Part shown: positions 7,176-63,145 of the stretch, in pieces
Numbering within the stretch: position 1 is the stretch's first letter
Layout of the letters: every line of letters starts with the position of its first letter
Source: Dicyema japonicum
Lineage: Eukaryota; Animalia; Dicyemida
Length of the DNA: 64,000 bases
Direction: 5' to 3'
Assembly: GCA_011109175.1 (NCBI GenBank)
Contig: RDEW01000003.1
Location: forward strand, 1,689,546 to 1,753,545
The notes under the pieces: model-generated
Told to the model about the DNA's origin: nothing
The model's input: the letters and a program-made list of their open reading frames with translations, nothing else
The model's database searches: none
Position numbers and translations under genes: made by a program

Positions 7176-8366
7176 TAGTTGGAATTGTATTCATGTTTAT
7201 TGAATAGTTGAAAATCACTGTGATTGCATCAATCGCTATAGGTCCAAGGTGTTATAATAAGATAACAGGGATAGAATCAGGCCCACGAGAGAAGGAAGAA
7301 TTCATCCTCTTCAAATCTTCACTGACATCTGAATGTGAGATAAAGTTAATCGGTTAGGTTTGGTCTCATTGAGGATAAATAAGGACCATCCAAATTTCCT
7401 GAAAATTTTGTAGTCTATACTGGCGTAATATTTCATAAGTTTGTTAAGACTGTGCTGATTCGTCTTTTGTCTGTTAGCATTTCCTTTTAAGCAAATTGGT
7501 AATTTTTCTCCATATCGTCTGAGTGTATTTCTAAAATGGAAGGGAAGGATGATATAGTTTGTCCCATTTGTTGACTTCATCTCTTCTAATCCTTTTTGAT
7601 ATTTTGTCATTGAAAGTTTTTGTTCGATTTTTTTGTCCGGGAAAAAAATACATGTCTTTTCAGACGATTCCTCTTTTTAATAAATTGGTGTTATGATCGA
7701 TTTTTCATTGTAGAATTTAAATCATCCGGGTGGAGTGAATATTCTCCGCACCATGAGAATTGTTTTGTTCACTTTTTTGATTCGAATAATGATTGGATTG
7801 TGATCGGAAAGTAATCCATAATGCACCGTCCATGATGTGTCCGGTGCAAGGTTTGGGGAACAGAAGGTAATGTCCGGGGATGTTGATGCATAGTTTTCCA
7901 TGTAAGGAGTCCTATTGTGCTTCCTGGAGTTATTAAAGATAGTCAGAGAGGTGAGTTGGTTTAGGATAATCCTCTTGAGTCTGCTGGCTGTGATTTTAAC
8001 CAGGCTGGATGTTTAGCATTAAAATCTCCACACAATATCAGGTTTCCAAACTTGTTTAACTTGGTTAGGTTTAGTGAGAATCCTTTTGGGCAAGAAGATG
8101 GAGGGGGGAAGTGGATGTTTGTAATGTTAAAAGTCCCGAATCGACTTGTAATTGATATTCCAGATATTTCTGTAATGATGAAAAGACCCCCACCACGACG
8201 GTTTAATGAAAAACGGTAGTTAGAGAATTTTGCTTTTGATTTCGTTGATGTTTATCTGCAGAATTGAGAGTGGGGGCCTGGATTAAGTTCAATGTCATCG
8301 GTGAGAATTATCAGAAACCTATTCAGCCGAAGGGGATTAAGAAAAAAAAAAGGCCGTTGTCCAAAG

Positions 8367-8450
8367 AGTCTTTCTTCGGATGGGAAGTAGTTAATGGTGG
8401 ACCCTGAGCACCTCCAGAACTTTCATAACAGGTAGACTACATAACGTCAA
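8367..8450 (-). ncRNA. Degenerate HDV-like 5' fold of LINE
   Basis: UUGACGUU-AUG-UAGUCU-ACC...GGU-GCUCA...CGAAGAA-AGACU, the same layout as four other LINE 5' ends. P2 (AGUCU/AGACU) covaries with them. Confidence 0.45.
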
Positions 8451-8459
8451 GTTTTCTTA

Positions 8460-12814: not shown

Positions 12815-15792
12815 GGCTGCGTTTTACAAGAACATCGTACTCTGCCGGTCCCGAAAACCTTCCAGTAGTGTTATTGAAGAACCTTAGAGATATGGGAGTC
12901 GGTTTTCTAACGTCGGTTTTCAACTATTCAATTAATTGTAATGCAATTTTGAATATTTAAATTGTAGCGTGGCTTTATGTGGTCCACCAATTCAAACAAT
13001 TCAAAAGGATTTGGTAACGCCCAGAGGGCTTCTAATACCCTCTCGAAAAGGACCATTAGACCCCTTCCTCCCCGGGTCATTATCGACCTCCGGCGATATG
13101 TTTCAAGAAAGTCCAAACATTCCCTGCGAAAACCCTCAGCCCACTGTGGAGATAAGAAATTTACTGCTCTCCAATAAACATCAACGGAATTAAAGGAAAG
13201 GTCAGGGAACTCCGTCAATCCTGGCAAATCAGAAGATCGCCGTGGCCATGATTCAAGAAACTAAACTCCGCATGCATGATTCCACTCCTTTATTCCCTGG
13301 ATACGAAGCCATCAGGATGGAATGTAAAAAGAGAAGAGAGGGTGGACTACTTACTCTATTCAAAAAGAACCTGAAATGCAGAGATATTACTTCGGAAGTG
13401 AGGAAACTTGTAGGAAATTACGAGGTTACTGAGACAATTGAAATCTCGCTTGGGACAACGAAAGGAAGTCTGTGCCTCGTGAATATCTACCTTTTTTTGG
13501 CTCCTGCCCAAAGGACTATGTTATTCCAAACCTATCAAGATTGCCTATCTACGATGAGATAATCATATGTGGAGATTTAAATGCAAAGCACCCATTATGG
13601 TTGTCAACCCAACAGGCCGACACGAGAGGGAAGCTATTGTTATTGAAATCGGACTCCCTAACGATACTGAACGATCCAGCGAAAAATACAAGGACCCCAC
13701 TAAGAGAGATGGATCAGCCTACCTTACCGGATGTAACACTCTGCTCATCGTCGCTTTCATCAAAAATTGATTGGTCAGTCTTCTACGAAACAAGAAGCGA
13801 CCATAATCCAATTGTGAAAGGTCATGAGAAAAGTCATAGTGAGGAGAACACCTGCTAGTCAAAACTACAAAGCTACTAATTGGGAATTGTATCGCGCAAT
13901 CTCTGATGATAGACTGAAGAATTGTTACTTTGTCAGCTTCAAATCGCTAGAAAAAGTGATCAAATACTTTACTTGCACAATCCTAGAAGCAAGATCATTG
14001 GCAATTCCCAAGCATCGTCTAAACTCCTCTAATGGTGGAGGGAAGTCGGCATTGATCAAAGAAGGAAATCACCTCAAAAAATCTAATTGGATCACATTAA
14101 AAACGAAACTCCGGATCAGAGCTCTAAACAACGAAATAAAGGCCAGAGAGTTCAAGGCACTGAAATTGAAGTGGAATAGGATTCTTACAAAAGTAAATCG
14201 CAACCGTAGTACTGGAGAAGTGTGGAAAGCAAACTTCCCCCGAGGATGACTATACTCAACGAGACGTTAACAATTTGATAAAATTCTACACAAAAATTTC
14301 GTACAAGGAACACAGGAAGTCGGAAGTGCTTCTCTCTTCACGGAGAAAACTGAAGAAGGATTCTAACCCAGTTTACTTCTCGGATGAAGACGTGAAGAAT
14401 GCGCTGCGTTTTACAAGAACAACGTACTCTGCCGGTCCCGACAACATTCCAGTAGTGTTATTGAAGAACCTTGGAGATATGGGAGTCGGTTTTCTAACGT
14501 CGATTTTCAACTATTCAATTAATTGTAATGTAATACCGTTGTTATGGAAGCAAGCCAATATCCGACCTATACTGAAACCTGGAAAACCTAAGGAAGATCC
14601 GGCATCATTTAGACCTGTGTCATTGTTATGTTCCGCATCGAAAATCCTGGAGAGGCTTGTGCTTGGGAGAATCAAGGCTTTCTTCTCAGAAAAGGATTTT
14701 TAACACGGATTCAAGAGCGATTGTTCTACATCAACGTACCTACAGAAATTAACCAACTTCATTAGAGATGGATTTTCAAACAAACCAAGGCATTTGAAAA
14801 CAGTCTTATGTTCCATTGATATTAACAAGGCCTTTGATTCTATTTCGAGAAAATATTATCGAAGAAAATTTTCCAGTCGAGATCCCGGGAAGCTTAAACT
14901 TTGGATAACAAATTTCTTAAGTGGACGAAGGGGACGTGTATGCCTCAGAGGACTGAAATCAGTCTCACGTCTTCTCCCAAACAGTGTCCCCCAAGGATCT
15001 CCTTTATCCCCCGCCTTATTCAATTTATACCTGGCCGACCTCCCGACACCGGAATCCAATAACGATGTTCTACTCACATATGCGGACGACATTGTTTTGG
15101 CCTCGCGTGATCGGGATATCCAAAATGCTACAGAAAGATTACAAATTAACCTGGACCGACTCAACGCCTGGGTAATGAAGAACCGACTCACGATAAATTC
15201 CAGAAAGTCGGTCACGTCTATGTTTACTTCGGACAAAAGGTTGAGGAAGATGACTGCCAAGTTAAAATTGGACAACATTGAAATCCCTTCAGCAAATGTC
15301 AAAGATCCTGGGCGTGACACTGGATACACACTTATGTTTGTCACCACACGTGGCAAACATTGTTCTGAAGTGCGAGAAGAAGGATCAATGTATTAAAATG
15401 TTTATCTGGAATATGGAAGAGGTACCCACCCGGTCTTGATGAATTTACAAGCAATACATCGAACCATGCTTCTCGCACGCGTGTGCTTCGTGGGACCTTC
15501 ATTATCATGGACGAATACTAAAAAATCGAGGACGTACAAAAGAAGGCTTTCAGAGTCACGGAGCGGTGGACTTATGGGAGACACAGAACCGTACCGACTA
15601 CTCTGGAGGCCCTGATCAAACTAAACTCCGGCATGCATGAAGGTGGCCCTGCAAATACAGTCAGCCGCCCTGTACGAGCTTGTGTGGGTACGAGGGAGGA
15701 GCACCGGGAAAGAATGAGGATTTTGGCGGAGCGCATCGGGATCACGTGATAGTTAGTTTTGGTTTTACCGTGGTCTTGGGTGTTAAATAAAT
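12815..15792 (+). mobile_element. Full-length Ingi/Vingi-like LINE (single ORF APE+RT, no ORF1 or RNase H seen), frameshifted
   Basis: 5' fold with ATG 12977; APE motifs MIQETKL, CGDLNAKHP, RSDHNPI; RT motifs FRPVSLL, IDINKAFDS, PQGSPLSP, YADD; 3' GGGATCACGTGA module. Confidence 0.92.
12969..13055 (+). ncRNA. HDV-like 5' fold with an expanded, non-canonical L3
   Basis: P1 GGCUUU/AACGCC (one mismatch), AUG, P2 UGGUCC/GGACCA, extended P3 ACCAA...UUGGU, P4 AGAGGG/CCCUCU, J4/2 CGAAAA. Confidence 0.6.
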
Positions 15793-52844: not shown

Positions 52845-55800
52845 TTAGCGTGCGTCATGTGGTTCACCGTTTCTGGTGGCGTCGGATAATAATAATAATA
52901 AAAGCCTTTTCACGAGAGCCATAGTATTTTATAGCTCCGCATAGGCAGGACACACACTTTATTTAAGTAAAGAACAGTTAATTTTAACTAATCGTAGAAC
53001 CAAGGAATGATCTTCACTTTTTTTTTCTTCTTCTTGTGTGAGTGTCCTTTCTAGACAATCCAGTTCCGCAGTGAGTATCCACTGATGACGGCGTCACTCG
53101 TCAAACCCTTTCTGCATCGTAAATGCGTGGAACCTTCCACCAGGTGAACAGCAGCGAGATTCGAACCCGTAGCTATGCCACCTGGTGGCGTCGGATATAG
53201 TCCTAAACTATATCTAAAAAGAACCATTTGCTCTCTACCAACCAGAGGATTTCCCACTGGACGGCATTCTCTCACTGTTGGAACATTCTATCGATTGAGA
53301 CTGTTGACCTCAGGAGACGTGAAACAAAATCCAGGCCCAAAGAAGTTAACAATCCAAAGCTTAAACATAAACGGGATCAGAGGAAAGATTGCCGAACTTT
53401 CCTTATTTTTGGAGAGGAACAAAGTGGACATCTGCCTTCTCCAGGTAACGAAGCTTTCAAATAACATTCCTACTCCTCTCTTTAACGGATACAACACAGT
53501 AAGATCCGACCGCCCATCTGGCCAAGGAGGGGGTCTACTGACTCTTGTGAGAAAAGGAATAAAATACTTCAAGAACCTTTCTCTTTACAAAACCTTAATA
53601 GAAGACTCGAACACGGAGATAATTGGAATCTCTATTATAACTTCCATTGGAAAAATTGAAATTGCGAATGTTTATGTTCCTCTTCCTGGCTCCTGCAAGA
53701 AAAATTTCTCCTTTGACCTATCTACCTTGGACAAACTGGAGAACTTGCTTTTATGTGGAGACCTGAATGCGAAGCACTCTTCTTGGTTCCGCTACCAATC
53801 GCTACGAAACCTGCTATTATCCCAAATGCAAAACTTAATAATCATCAACAACCCGAAAAAGAACACTAGGACACTATACAACACGAAGGACATGGTGACA
53901 TCTCCGGACTTATCAATCTGCTCGCCTCGTCTTTCCCGATCATTAATTGGACGGTCCGTTATGACCTCCGGAGTGACCACCATTCAATGATAATGAAGCT
54001 GAACTGCGAACCACGTTTTGTACCGAAGCCTATTCATTTCTATGATTACTAAAATGCAAATTGGACTGACTTTACAAATTTCGTTGATTCAAAACTGCAA
54101 TATTTCCACCCTGAAAATTTCTCCTCCATAGACAAAGCTGTATACTATTTCAACAAAAAATCATTGACGGAGAAAATTTTTATCAGAAAAGCATATATAA
54201 AAAACGAAAAATTGAAATACAACTCAAAAACAAAGAAAATAATTATGGAAAGAAACAACCTTAAGAGAATGATACATCGTTCACGAGAGGTTATTAATCG
54301 AATCAGGTCACTAAACATTCTTATCACGAAAAGCACAAACAACACCCAAAGGAAGAAACTCATTCGAATCTCTGCTGCCATGAATAATCAGACCTCAATT
54401 TCCAACATGTGGAAGATGTTGAGGCGTCTGAAAAACCCAGAATACGAAGATAACAAAGAACAATGCCAGCTCAATCTGAATAAATTTATGAAACATTGTA
54501 TTCGAATCAGTCACATTCCTTATAAAAAGATTAACACACAAACGAAAATAAAGAGAAAGTTATCCAAAATGGCCCCGCTGACTTATTTTCTCCTAAAGAT
54601 GTATCCAAAGCAATATCAAATCAGAAAAAAACAAACTCATGTGGCCCAGACGGAATTCCTCTTATTCTGCTGAAACACTTGGGCCCAGCATCAATAAATG
54701 CATTGACAATCATCTACAACACATCGCTAAACATAAATACCATACCGACTTTATGGAAACTATCAAAAATTCGTCCAATATTGAAACCGGGAAGACCGAA
54801 GAACGATCCCGGCTCTTACAGACCAGTTTCCCTTATATGTGTTTTGTGGAGGATCCTGGAGAAACTGGTCCTGAAACTTATTCGCCCTTCTCTCCCACAA
54901 CCTACATTCCAACATGGCTTCAAGGAAGGATTACCAACAACCTCCTTCCTAACAACATTAATGAAGTTTATAACTGAAGGACACAAGAACAAGCCAAAAC
55001 AGGAAAAATCGGTCATATGTACGAACATTCAAAAAGTATTAGACTCTGTCCCAAGAATGATCCTCATACAAAAATTGATGCACCACTAAAGTTATGGATA
55101 GCAAATTTCTTAAGTGGACACCGAGGGAAAATGTCATCGGAAACAAGAGTTCCAGATCGGGATTATTACCCAATGGTGTACCTCAGGGATCTCCTTTGTC
55201 ACCAATCTTCTTTAATTTGTTTTTGAATGATCTCTCCCGTACCCATGAATAATAATGACATGCTACTTTCCTATGCCGATGACATAGTTGTCGCATCTAA
55301 GACGTAAATGTCATGCTAAAGAAAGACTACAAGGAATACTAAATAACATATATTGGATGGTTGTGCGAAATCGATTAAATGCATATTCCCAAAAGTCAGC
55401 AGTCACTCTATTTACTAAGAATAGAAAGATGGGAACGCAAACAATTGATGGCACTTTAAATGGAGTACCTATACCACAAAAGACATCGCAGAAGATATTG
55501 GGAGTAACTTTTGATAATTTCCTCTGCTTCTCAGCCCATGTGGAATCTATCATATCAACCTGTGCAAAGAAGATCAATTTTGTCATAGCCTTCCTTTGGA
55601 ATAGTGGAGGAATTTATCCGTCAGGTATCGGGACCCTTACAAGCAGTATGTCGAGCCAACAATAGGCTATGCATGTGCTGCATGGGGATCTAACCTGTCG
55701 GAAACGAACCTAACAAAAATTTAAGAGATCCAGTTAAGAGCAAAAAATTACTGGAAAAATACAGATAAAGAAATTGCCCCAAACTCGAGTCTATCATAGA

Positions 55801-56542: not shown

Positions 56543-56616
56543 AATTTTCGATGTGGTTCACCTTCACGTGGAGAAAATTGGATACCAGTTTCAATCTGGC
56601 AACTAAAAGAACCACA
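56543..56616 (+). ncRNA. HDV-like self-cleaving ribozyme (near canonical) at a LINE 5' end
   Basis: P1 AAUUUUC/GAAAAUU; P2 UGUGGUUC/GAACCACA; P3 ACC/GGA (one mismatch); L3 UUCACGU; GG for P1.1; P4 CCAG/CUGG; J4/2 ACUAA with the catalytic-position C at 56603. Confidence 0.8.
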
Positions 56617-57250
56617 ATTATTCCCCTGTCAATTTTTTCAACGACCTCTGGGAAGTCGGACTAAATGATGGCGGCTATTGAGCGGGCATGTAGCTTTCGC
56701 TCCCAAAGATCGGATTGGCTAACAGAACCCCGGGCCACATAAGAACGGCAATTTCCTCAATATCATGCAATTCTACATAAAAGGCCTCACACAAATCAAC
56801 TTTTTGCATTTCAAACTTCCCGCAAAATTGATATTGCCATGCTACAAGAAACGAAACTATCAAGAAATTCAGTGCTTCTACACTACAAAGACTACTCAAT
56901 TGTTAGCCGTGATCGATAGAATTCAAACAGAGGAGGCGGTGTTCTCATACACAAATCCATTCCATTCTCCGATACTTCCGCTCAGACACAAGCTCTGGTG
57001 AAGATGACGATCACATCGAACTTCTTCCGTCTTGGTGAAAATAAACCACACAAGGTGTACATTTGTAAATATTTACATCCCGCCACCAAGTCCCAGTATG
57101 AAACATTACTCCCCAAAATAACCGAATTGCAATAGATCGAAAATGTGATAATCTACGGAGACCTAAATGCAAAAGATCCGCTCTGGCTAATCGGCCAAAA
57201 GAGTAATGAGAGTTCCCACGGTTGCAGAACCGGAGATCTTCCAATATTAC
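56543..57250 (+). mobile_element. 5' part of an Ingi/Vingi-like LINE (ribozyme, interrupted 2A, APE)
   Basis: LLSGHV[27-nt insert]EQNPGP, then NIMQFYIKGL, MLQETKL and IYGDLNAKDP. Confidence 0.85.
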
Positions 57251-60240: not shown

Positions 60241-63145
60241 TTATTTATTTATTTTAATAACCCCAGGAACACAGAGAAAGAAAGACAAAAGAGTCAACAG
60301 TTAGGTGATCCCAGTCCTCGCAATCACTTGTGCCATTCGACGTCTGTGATCTCCATCGTCCCCACTACTTTCCGGAAGAGCCTTCTCTCGGTCTTGCAGA
60401 GGAATCCGATCGGGGAGGGGAATTTCTTATCCAATCGGTTTTCTCTTGCCATGGGAAGGATCAGGCGAAGCGGATTTCCATCTTCCTCACAGACGCGAAG
60501 AAATCCGGAGCCACGACTACGGATCTTAGCTTCCATGAGTAGTGGGTCGACTGTTGATCCATTACGTGGGCAAAGCATACTGACTGTTTTCCGGTATATC
60601 GAGTTGATTCTTTGGACCATAGACTCCGATAGACCGAAACTCCATGCAATGGAGGCATACTCAATGGCAGGCGAGATTGTTTGTTGGTAGAGGGTAGAAA
60701 CGGAAAAGTCCATGTTCCTCGTGGTCCTCCGAACAAGGGCGGCCCCTGGTGATCATGTCTGTTGCGTGGGAGTTGAATTTGAGAAGGCTGTCGTACTTGA
60801 CTCCAAGGACAGTGGGGGACCTTGTCACTGGAATCCTAGTGGGACCAATGAAAAGACTCGGTTCATCCTTGGAACGACGGTCCGACGTGAATGTGGAACA
60901 GATAGACTTGGTTGCAGAAATCGTTAGTCGATTGCCACAATCCAATCGTGGAGAATGTTCAATTTTGTCTGAGTTTTAAGGGATGCGACTTGAGTCGAGC
61001 GGTTCCGTATTGCAATGACTACGTCGTCTGCGTAGGATAATAACAGGGAATCTTCGTCTCCATCATTAGGTAGGTCGTGTAGGAAAAGGTTGAATAGAAT
61101 TGGTGAAAGTGGAGACCCCTGGGGTACCCCGTTCGGTAGTAATCGTGATCTAGATCTGAGATCACCACTGACTACTCTTCCACGTCTTCCAGACAAAAAG
61201 TTGGCCAGCCATAATTTCACATTCGGACGAATATTAGTAGAAAAATTTTTCCAACCAAGATTTTCCTCGAAACAGTGTCAAAGGCTTTGTTGATGTCAAT
61301 AGAAACCAAGATTGTGCGTTTGTGAGGCGGAGGATGGGTGTTAAAACCGTCGGCAATGAACTGCGATAAAGTTGCCAAGTATGTAGCGGTGGACCTACCG
61401 CGGAGGAAACCATGTTGAAATATAGGACGCGGAAGATACGGAATAATGACTGATAATACAAGTTTCTCCATAATTTTTGACAGTGTGCTGGTAACGGAAA
61501 TAGGCCTGTAGGATGCAGGTTCTGTCTCTGGTTTCCCAGCCTTCAATATCGGTCTGATGATAGAATTCTTCCAAATCTTAGGAATAATATTATAGTTAAT
61601 GGACAGATTGTATATATGCGTGAGGTAGCCAATTGCGTAGTGGCTTAGGTGTTTTAGGTGAATAGAAGATACTTTGTCAGGCCCGCACGCCCGTGAGCTC
61701 TTTAATCTGGTGATCACATCCAAGACTTGGTCATCTGTGAATAGTTCGTGATAAGGTTCCTTCTTCGGTTTATGGGCACGCACCTTAATGTCCAGGTGTT
61801 TCGAGAATGGTTTGAAGCTAATTCCAGCGTAATGTTTCATAAGGATGTTAGGATGTAGGTGGCATAAGTGTTCAGGAAAGACTTTCCGGTTCCGTCTGCA
61901 TCATCCAGCTCCGACTTGACTTGTTTAAGAGTTTTCCAGAAATGTCGGGATGTACCCTGTCGAGGTGGTTAACTAGATGCTGCCATCTTGTCCTTGTGTT
62001 CTTTTATGCTCTGACAGATCCTTTTATTCAGTTGTCTGAGGGCTGTCAAAGACTTCATGTCCAACAGATGGCATCTCTTCAGCCGGTCTCTTTGTTTTAT
62101 AAGACTTATTGTATAAGAGCTGAGGGTAGGAATAAACTTCTTGTATGACGATATAGGAATAAAAATATGGTCAGCTTTCTGAATGGCAGCGCTGATAATT
62201 TCTGCGGCCTCATCAATAGAGCGTATTGGGGAGGATAATCTCCGAGCCAAGAATTTATCCACAAGGTTACTGAAACCAGACAAGTCAACCTTCGTATAAT
62301 CCTTGAATCTTTTTGATTCCGCCGGTCGTCTCCTGTATCGTCGAAGACCTCTCAGTTTTAGAAGGATTGGATTGTGGTCACTGGAGAAGCCGTAAAAGAC
62401 GTTCCAGGAAATGAGTCCAGCCAGAAAAGGTGAGCATAGTGTTAAGTCGGGGGATGTGCAGCTATCAGTCATCCTTAATGGGGTCCTCGTATGTGAGTTA
62501 GGGTTGTTCAGTATAATCAGGTCAGGAAGATAATTTGCAATGAGTTCTCCTCGGTTATCGGAGGATTGGGAAGTGAGCCAAACTGGATGTCGTGCATTAA
62601 GATCCCCACATAACAGTAGGTTTTTTAATGTTGAAAAATCAGGGGTGTAAGATGACGGACACGATCCTTGTGGAGGAATATATAAATTAGCCAAATGGAT
62701 CCAAAAGGACGGGAATAACTCGATTTTGACAGTAATCTGTTCCAAAGTCTTGTCGGAGCCAAGAAGCTCTGAGGTTTGTTGAGTTGTATCCATAAAAGGA
62801 ATATCGTTCTTTATAATAGTAAGTAGTCCTTCTCCGCGTCCTCCCTGACGATCTTTACGGATCACTGTGTATCCGGGAAAACTTCCTGATCCCATTCGTA
62901 TTCAGTTGTATAATTGTAAAACCTCTTCATGGACCAGGATTGGTTTCGACGTCCCCACATTGAAGAATCAAAAGTCTGGATAAATGGGGACACCAGACAG
63001 GGTCGAAGACACAGAAGATGAGAGGACCACCGGACGGTGGTGAGAAGCTGTTGGCTCTTTTCGTTTCATTTTGGAATGGGTGACACCGTTTCTGGTGAGC
63101 CACATGACACCAAGCTAACATTATTTAGAAGCCTCTGAATTAACC
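60241..63145 (-). mobile_element. Full-length 2.9-kb Ingi/Vingi-like LINE with 6-bp TSD
   Basis: TSD GTCGTT (60235-60240, 63146-63151); 5' fold; 2A QCGDVETNPGP (core 62930-62953); APE 61969-62895; RT 60924-61840; GGGATCACCTAA 3' module and (TAAA)n tail. Confidence 0.93.
63052..63113 (-). ncRNA. HDV-like 5' fold with non-canonical L3
   Basis: P1 GGUGUC/GUCACC (one mismatch), AUG, P2 UGGCUC/GAGCCA, P3 ACC-AGAAAC-GGU, P4 CAUU/AAUG, J4/2 ACGAAAA. Confidence 0.6.

Follow-up and report, generated by a model that had tools for sequence, protein, structure and literature searches.

Predicted start codons in or beside a conserved HDV-like RNA fold, followed by a 2A motif, in LINEs of Dicyema japonicum

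Five LINE 5' ends in the window

The stretch of DNA analysed here (the window) comprises 64,000 nucleotides of contig RDEW01000003.1 (positions 1,689,546 to 1,753,545, forward strand) from GenBank assembly GCA_011109175.1 of the dicyemid Dicyema japonicum. It carries five divergent 5' ends of long interspersed nuclear elements (LINEs), called copies A to E below, each with an ATG associated with an RNA fold whose predicted topology resembles that of hepatitis delta virus (HDV) ribozymes. A first-pass annotation of the window had placed these ATGs at 52857(+), 12977(+), 56551(+), 63105(-) and 8442(-), and each is indeed present and followed by a UGGNNC-ACC motif. The annotation also assigned all five the order P1-AUG-P2-ACC-loop-GG-P1'-hairpin-J4/2-P2'. 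This layout is found in copies A to D, but not in copy E, which is decayed and carries an internal deletion.

Copy A is a member of the family that we term s1. Its 5' part (52845..52888, + strand) consists of the inherited leader UUAGCGU, stem P1, an AUG in the joining region J1/2 (52857-52859), the P2 strand UGGUUC, the P3 strand ACC, loop L3 and the P3'/P1' segment as far as an insertion. The inserted sequence (52889..53181, - strand) is a 293-bp dispersed repeat that resembles a short interspersed nuclear element (SINE) and lies within the fold, with a 16-bp target duplication, CTGGTGGCGTCGGATA, on either side (52873-52888 and 53182-53197). Beyond it, the 3' part of the fold (53198..53226, +) supplies the P4 hairpin, J4/2 (CUAAAAA) and P2' (GAACCA, 53221-53226). 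The remainder of the leader peptide and a 2A sequence, LLTSGDVKQNPGP, are encoded at 53227..53339 (+), wherein the NPGP codons occupy 53328-53339. The apurinic/apyrimidinic endonuclease (APE) region of the LINE open reading frame (ORF) follows at 53340..54150 (+), beginning with KKLTIQSLNINGIRGK and breaking down after ~270 amino acids. As had been claimed, the frame of the 52857 ATG is uninterrupted through 2A and into APE once the repeat is disregarded: with the insert and one of the duplicates excised, it reads MWFTVSGGVGYSPKLYLKRT...LLTSGDVKQNPGP-KKLTIQSLNINGIRGK.

Copy B (12963..13048, +) belongs to a long-L3 family and includes a leader, a P1 with one mismatch (GGCUUU/AACGCC), the AUG at 12977 and P2 (UGGUCC/GGACCA). 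Its 2A sequence is decayed, and its ATG frame extends as far as the first APE residues (KKFTALQ), as previously noted, and then meets a stop codon. Copy C (56543..56614, +), from family s2, has a P1 of 7-8 bp (CAAUUUUC/GAAAAUUG) at its extreme 5' end, J1/2 GAUG with the AUG at 56551, the L3 sequence UUCACGU, P4, J4/2 CAACUAAAA and P2'. Its NPGP codons (56726-56737) are out of frame with the AUG owing to a private deletion, and the length obtained from the majority columns of s2 is in frame.

Copy D (63050..63121, -), from family s3, carries an AUG in its leader (63121-63119), which is in frame with 2A, as well as the J1/2 AUG (63105-63103), P2 (UGGCUC/GAGCCA) and NPGP codons at 62941-62930. 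Its J1/2 AUG had correctly been described as out of frame (it is in frame +2), but this is the modal state of s3 and not a defect of the individual copy. Copy E (8360..8456, -) does carry AUG-UAG at 8442 in a decayed fold, from which a ~22-nucleotide internal deletion removed J4/2 together with the 3' half of P4 and much the larger part of P2'. The AGUCU/AGACU pairing that had been offered as P2 covariation in this copy is an artefact of the deletion; the sister copy L103 has GGACCA plus a downstream AGACT.

The repeat inserted in copy A belongs to a young and abundant family, with 2338 candidate copies at first look, and 40 that were scored are full length with 95-98% identity. ARAGORN finds no tRNA in the inserted repeat, and the label of a tRNA-derived SINE is thus not established for it.

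Element anatomy and genome-wide search

There is an intact sister of copy A in the same family, L097:2574-5381(-), with a 935-amino acid ORF that begins at the same AUG and has no second methionine within its first 120 residues. Pfam identifies the domains Exo_endo_phos (65-278; also Exo_endo_phos_2) and RVT_1 (549-795) in this protein, and no RNase H domain. The intact element is ~2.9 kb long, with a leader of ~10-13 nucleotides and essentially no 5' untranslated region (UTR), no ORF1, and a 3' UTR of ~50 nucleotides that is followed by an (AAT)n tail. There are hundreds of LINE copies with flanks that are unrelated among copies, and the 5' boundaries were set at the point where these flanks diverge. 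Among five s1 copies checked, none has a convincing target-site duplication. With APE and reverse transcriptase (RT) in one ORF, dispersed copies and a simple-repeat tail, these elements are compact single-ORF APE-type LINEs.

The 67.5-Mb assembly (377 contigs) was searched for the fold with the pattern ATGTGGNNCACC-N25-55-AAAGNNCCA, which gives 232 genome matches versus none in a reversed control. About 90 fold copies were retrieved and sorted into families s1, s1b, s2, s3, s4 and s5, the last of which is a heterogeneous long-L3 group. To avoid ascertainment through the fold motif, a second sampling used only the 2A motif (GGNGAYRTNGARNNNAAYCCNGGNCC). There are 319 exact coding sites for GD(V/I)ExNPGP in the 67.5 Mb, compared to none in the reversed control, and they are distributed over at least 15 LINE families. 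The LINE population of this genome is unusually rich in 2A.

A conserved double pseudoknot

An alignment of 78 distinct copies was used to assess the fold. The outer P2 pairs and the AUG are imposed by the search pattern, and the evidence is therefore confined to P1 and the free positions. P2 is paired in 98.9% of the alignment, and its two free pairs are UA 57 / CG 13 / UG 2 and UA 61 / UG 9 / CG 5. Both strands vary in five of the six P1 pairs. For the structure as a whole, 87% of the cells are paired; shifting the 3' partners by 1-3 columns lowers this to 35-47%, and the observed covariation score is not attained in any of 500 shuffles. The P2 covariation noted in the first-pass annotation is thereby confirmed.

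The families found by their 2A motif provide further compensatory versions of P2, namely CGGUUC/GAACCG in F10 and UGACUC/GAGUCG in F12. The P1 stem is likewise variable, with AUGUCA/UGGCAU in F5, AUGAC/GUCAU in F6, AUGCC/GGUGU in F11 and AAUUUUC/GAAAAUU in s2. An unbiased scan for the longest helix retrieves P1 in s2, s4, F5, F6, F11 and copy L084, and minimum free energy folding retrieves P2, P3 and P4. Thermodynamic z-scores for the nested part of the fold are weak (-0.5 to -2.4), and so we accept the structure because of its covariation and not because of its folding energy. P1 crosses P2, and P3 and P4 are nested inside P2. From these comparisons, the first 55-75 nucleotides of the RNA are predicted to be a conserved double pseudoknot of HDV-like topology, composed of P1, P2, P3 and usually P4.

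These data also bear on whether the module acts mainly as an internal promoter at the DNA level, or as a conserved N-terminal peptide, such that the RNA helices are incidental. There is precedent in the Pr77 segment of L1Tc, which serves as promoter and ribozyme alike (PMC3383444), and the leader UUAGCGU, which we call type I, resembles an initiator-like start site, although this likeness is read from sequence only. Among the compensatory changes in P1 and P2, however, G.U pairs are numerous; these would be functional only in the sense RNA and therefore point to RNA of that strand rather than DNA. In addition, the encoded peptide is wholly different among families that have the same RNA motif. 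We therefore give very little credence to this explanation.

Reading frame and start codon

As a measure of frame, we counted the nucleotides that separate the fold AUG from the NPGP Asn codon in each usable copy. This distance is in frame, with no intervening stop codon, in s1 (162 nucleotides in 10 of 13 copies), s4 (165 in five of six), F7 (177 in four of six), F8 (180 in three of five), F9 (159 in one copy) and F10 (153 in two of four). The majority columns of s2 give 201 nucleotides, and each of the deviant copies in this family has its own private indel. Families F5, F6 and F11 have no leader, and the first triplet of the element is an AUG that lies inside P1 and is in frame with 2A. Here the distance is 117 nucleotides in four of seven F5 copies (114 in one more), 183 in all eight F6 copies, where J1/2 has UUG, and 135 in four of five F11 copies (129 in one more). 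The frame of F12 is ambiguous in the sample collected by the 2A motif.

Family s3 is organized differently. Its J1/2 AUG is found at an offset of 164 nucleotides in 7 of 12 copies and is in frame +2 in 8 of 12, and the three copies in frame 0 each arrive there via a different private indel. The inherited leader of this family, AAUGUU(GUU)AGCGU, provides an AUG that is 16 or 19 nucleotides further upstream, in frame with 2A (180/183 nucleotides) and open through the fold. There is also one family without 2A (L024, L052, L054 and L081) that shares the fold and the AUG in J1/2. Three of the four copies have an AUG frame that enters APE directly, wherein a leader of ~57 amino acids is joined in frame to the APE start (...SRIRDLHKSKDRISVTQLNVNGIKGK).

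Altogether, the 5'-most AUG is in frame and followed by a stop-free reading frame in 12 families, extending to 2A in 11 and straight to APE in one. The leader lengths vary among these families, which indicates that phase has been maintained through many indels. It is very unlikely that such agreement arose by chance on the naive expectation of 1/3, a figure to be read with the shared ancestry of the families in mind. The expectation that the J1/2 AUG is in frame with 2A and APE across the genome holds for most families, but fails in four (s3, F5, F6 and F11). Similarly, the broader proposal that the fold is translated and then followed by 2A is strongly supported in silico, except that 2A is not obligatory, as the family without it illustrates. 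These comparisons also support, in silico, an ORF that would begin inside the fold or just 5' of it.

Perhaps the real start codon is located downstream of the fold instead, at an internal methionine or a non-AUG codon, in which case the open frame is accidental and the fold is an untranslated 5' element. The ribozyme of L1Tc has been described as part of a 5' UTR (PMC3185411, PMC3383444), and a conserved in-frame methionine is located ~25 codons before NPGP in s2, F6 and L127, with another just past 2A in s2. In contrast, the segment from the 5' end to the essential N-terminus of APE contains just one in-frame AUG in s1, s3, F5, F7 and F11. The varied leaders are all stop-free and in phase with the first AUG, and the UAA or UGA triplets of J4/2 are always outside the frame that is used. 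Moreover, where the J1/2 AUG is out of phase, as in s3 and F5, there is nevertheless an in-frame AUG further 5'. This combination makes a downstream start quite improbable in our view.

The 2A motif and the leader peptide

In 11 families, GD(V/I)ExNPGP and an upstream hydrophobic tract are found within a single ORF that is in frame from the leader to APE, and the 2A motif is always directly upstream of the APE start. In every family, its proline precedes the conserved APE strand (L/I)N(I/V/T)NG by 5-14 residues, and therefore release at this position would yield a near-native N-terminus for the enzyme.

The RNA motif UGGYUCRCC, which comprises the 5' strand of P2 plus P3, is read in all three frames across the families. 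It encodes W-F/L/S-T in s1, s2, s4, F6 and F7-F10, G-S-P in F5, F11 and F12 (as in MSCGSPTTWW and MPRGSPVWW), and V-A-H in s3. The J4/2 stop triplets never fall in the frame that is used. Since one motif is read in three frames, it is the RNA that is conserved and not the peptide, and the leader would seem to be a by-product of RNA structure. The first-pass annotation went further in suggesting that 2A serves to discard a peptide imposed by the structure. The placement of 2A fits this suggestion. The family that lacks 2A indicates that a leader may also be tolerated as an extension. A homologue search with residues 1-160 found only two distant LINE proteins, which have an N-terminal 2A without an MW.T-type leader, although this result says little because a protein must share exact words and be of similar length to be detected by the search.

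Two additional sequence features were observed near the 2A motif and the fold. There is a conserved in-frame stretch, M-A-(A/T)-I-E-R-A-(R/Q)-S-(F/R)-R-S, located ~25 codons before NPGP in s2, F6 and L127 (L093, L144 and L127), which represents an alternative start or else an extension of the 2A context. Just 3' of P2', the motif (A)CUUUCCCUAUC is present in F5, F6, F11 and F12 and, more loosely, in s2 (L137, L120, L157, L144 and L093). Its reading frame differs (TFPY in F5, ISLS in F6), and it may be a further RNA-level element.

Possible ribozyme activity

The fold had been called an HDV-like ribozyme. The double-pseudoknot topology agrees with this name, but the leaders, the J4/2 sequences and the Rfam results leave the ribozyme label unestablished. 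If the RNA were active, cleavage at the base of P1 would produce an uncapped RNA with a 5'-OH, and initiation at the nearby AUG would be cap-independent and ribozyme-assisted. Family s2 comes near the canonical arrangement, with its P1 of 7-8 bp at the exact 5' end, a 7-nucleotide L3 (UUCACGU), GG after P1' and a C in J4/2. The first base of P1 is also the first base of the copies in F5, F6 and F11, and P1 of the s4 type can be drawn as a 7-bp stem that opens with a G.U pair. HDV-like ribozymes of LINEs have been reported to promote translation (PMC6765202, citing Ruminski 2011), and in a fusarivirus a hammerhead cleavage site 7 nucleotides before the start codon drives cap-independent translation (PMC13725137).

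However, families s1, s3, s4, s5 and F7-F10 have an inherited, sequence-conserved leader of 3-13 nucleotides 5' of a P1 that is 5-7 bp long, and in s1b this leader exceeds 40 nucleotides, which means that the retrotransposed templates were not cut at P1. In s3, cleavage at this site would also remove the only in-frame AUG. In HDV-like ribozymes, J4/2 has a catalytic cytosine with purines after it (C75-G/U-A-A). A C residue is located 5-7 nucleotides before P2' in s1, s1b, s2, s3, s4 and most of s5, but J4/2 lacks it in F5, F7, F11 and F12, leaving a run of A residues as the sole invariant feature of this segment. P3 is ACC/GGU in s1, s3 and s4, and in several families it is only 2 bp long (CC/GG in s2 and s5). 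As read from the sequence, P1.1, a 2-bp pairing of L3 with the bases that follow P1', can be drawn for s1, s1b, s2 and s4, but not for s3 or several s5 copies. The HDV-family models of Rfam have no match in the window at the gathering threshold, and at E<=10 they match neither copy C nor nine family representatives, a weak result given how narrow these models are. Self-cleavage is therefore doubtful in most families, and we consider it unlikely that an active ribozyme explains the module.

Some variants of these 5' ends deserve description. Family s1b (L012, L015, L016, L019 and others; for example, L012:1440-1800) is a non-autonomous element of ~280 bp, without 2A and without a long ORF. It consists of a conserved head of >40 nucleotides (..CCAGGGAGCTTGAATTGTTAGCG), an internal fold, a linker of ~100 nucleotides and a LINE-like 3' end (GGGATCACCTGA...AATAAATTTAA). 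Six s2 copies (L010, L018, L028, L046, L076 and L083) comprise only the first 150-190 nucleotides, corresponding to fold and linker, and then continue as unrelated sequence with variable breakpoints, which is the opposite of the usual 5' truncation of LINEs. Finally, the type I leader, found in s1, s3 and s5 (for example, at window positions 52845-52856 and at L089:55-75), has the form (U)UUUAG/CGUG and looks like a 3' splice acceptor or an initiator-like start site.

Comparison with known systems

A LINE head that combines a ribozyme with 2A is already known from L1Tc, and the elements described here are a variant of it in which the start codon is predicted to lie inside a translated fold. 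In L1Tc, the first 77 nucleotides hold an HDV-like ribozyme that published descriptions assign to the 5' UTR; 'a short peptide' comes next, and then 2A and APE (PMC3185411; PMC3383444). The D. japonicum elements share with L1Tc/ingi of trypanosomes a single-ORF APE-RT organization, an HDV-type fold at the extreme 5' end (Pr77, equivalent to L1TcRz, in L1Tc), and a short peptide plus an active-type 2A directly before APE (PMC3185411; PMC3708506). Unlike in L1Tc, whose ribozyme resides within a 5' UTR of >150 nucleotides and has been shown to cleave at +1 in vitro, the start codon here is inside a fold that would be translated, and cleavage is questionable in most families on sequence grounds. 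An RNase H domain, one of the features of the L1Tc/ingi clade, is also missing from L097, as judged by Pfam.

Double pseudoknots at the 5' end are likewise found in R2, R4, R6, RTE, Baggins and SART. For the uncapped RNAs of such LINEs, the HDV-like ribozymes have been proposed to serve a role like that of an internal ribosome entry site (PMC6765202). According to the descriptions in citing papers, those ribozymes form 5' UTRs upstream of the ORF and there is no 2A, in contrast to the arrangement reported here.

N-terminal 2A sequences are known from single-ORF LINEs of six clades, and the roles suggested for them are down-regulation of ORF2 or the separation of an N-terminal function (PMC3708506; PMC3894237). 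As in the Rex1, L2, CR1, Crack and Ingi elements (Odon et al. 2013, Luke et al. 2013), where the presence of 2A correlates with the absence of ORF1, GD(V/I)ExNPGP is located within the ORF2 protein's N-terminal part. Those accounts make no mention of ribozymes or RNA folds (PMC3708506; PMC3894237), whereas here a conserved RNA structure encodes the peptide that precedes 2A, in a frame that varies by family. The fusarivirus hammerhead system (Lopez-Galiano et al. 2026, PMC13725137) is similar in that its start codon is a few nucleotides from a 5' end defined by a ribozyme. There, however, the hammerhead is upstream of the cut and is discarded, while an HDV topology remains on the mRNA and must be translated. 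We found no description in the literature of a LINE ORF that starts inside a 5' fold, with the work of Ruminski et al. 2011 represented by papers that cite it.

Proposed mechanism and implications

The anatomy, the covariation and the conservation of frame recur from family to family, and from this pattern we infer use of the 5'-most AUG, skipping at 2A and a leader that is a functionless by-product. We consider it probable that the LINE ORF starts at this AUG, in or near the conserved fold, and that 2A then sheds the leader before APE-RT. Translation would begin in J1/2 in most families, at the first triplet in P1 in three, and in the short leader in one. The ribosome would then traverse the fold and linker, which amount to 39-67 codons, and release the leader peptide at the 2A sequence GD(V/I)ExNPG/P. 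Synthesis of APE-RT would go on from the proline that precedes (L/I)N(I/V/T)NG, giving an enzyme whose N-terminus is near native.

Several points weigh against this proposal. The case is built from DNA sequence, and the sequencing runs found for this organism are four DNA runs from a single 2019 study. Most copies are decayed, such that the frame calls rely on modal states. The families are related, and therefore the 12 cases are not fully independent. Cap-dependent scanning works poorly on an AUG that is 0-16 nucleotides from the RNA 5' end, and thus use of such an AUG would need either an unconventional mode of initiation or co-transcribed upstream sequence. Furthermore, the conserved in-frame methionine nearer to 2A in s2 and F6 (MAAIERARSFRSQ) could be the real start in those families, as could the one just past 2A in s2.

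The role of the fold could be self-cleavage in some families, protection of the 5' end, recruitment of the ribosome or RT, or promoter function. More tentatively, the pseudoknot might be an initiation module that contains the start codon and is derived from an HDV-like ribozyme whose cleavage activity most families no longer have, with 2A retained as a pseudo-start that discards the leader. Such a module would permit an RNA with little or no 5' UTR to be translated.

The N-terminal 2A of single-ORF LINEs has been without an agreed function since 2006-2013, and HDV-like folds at LINE 5' ends have so far been treated as untranslated. In D. japonicum, the fold and 2A are physically coupled in about a dozen families, and of the 12 families whose 5' AUG is in frame, 11 have 2A exactly where the normal N-terminus of APE would start. 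This coupling supplies a concrete and testable reason for 2A. The same elements offer a natural set of RNAs with leaders of 0-16 nucleotides for the study of unconventional initiation in eukaryotes, and they illustrate that an HDV-type topology can persist where the catalytic hallmarks appear to be lost. If the pseudoknot is indeed an initiation module and 2A a pseudo-start, this would explain the presence of N-terminal 2A sequences in the single-ORF LINEs of animals and trypanosomes.

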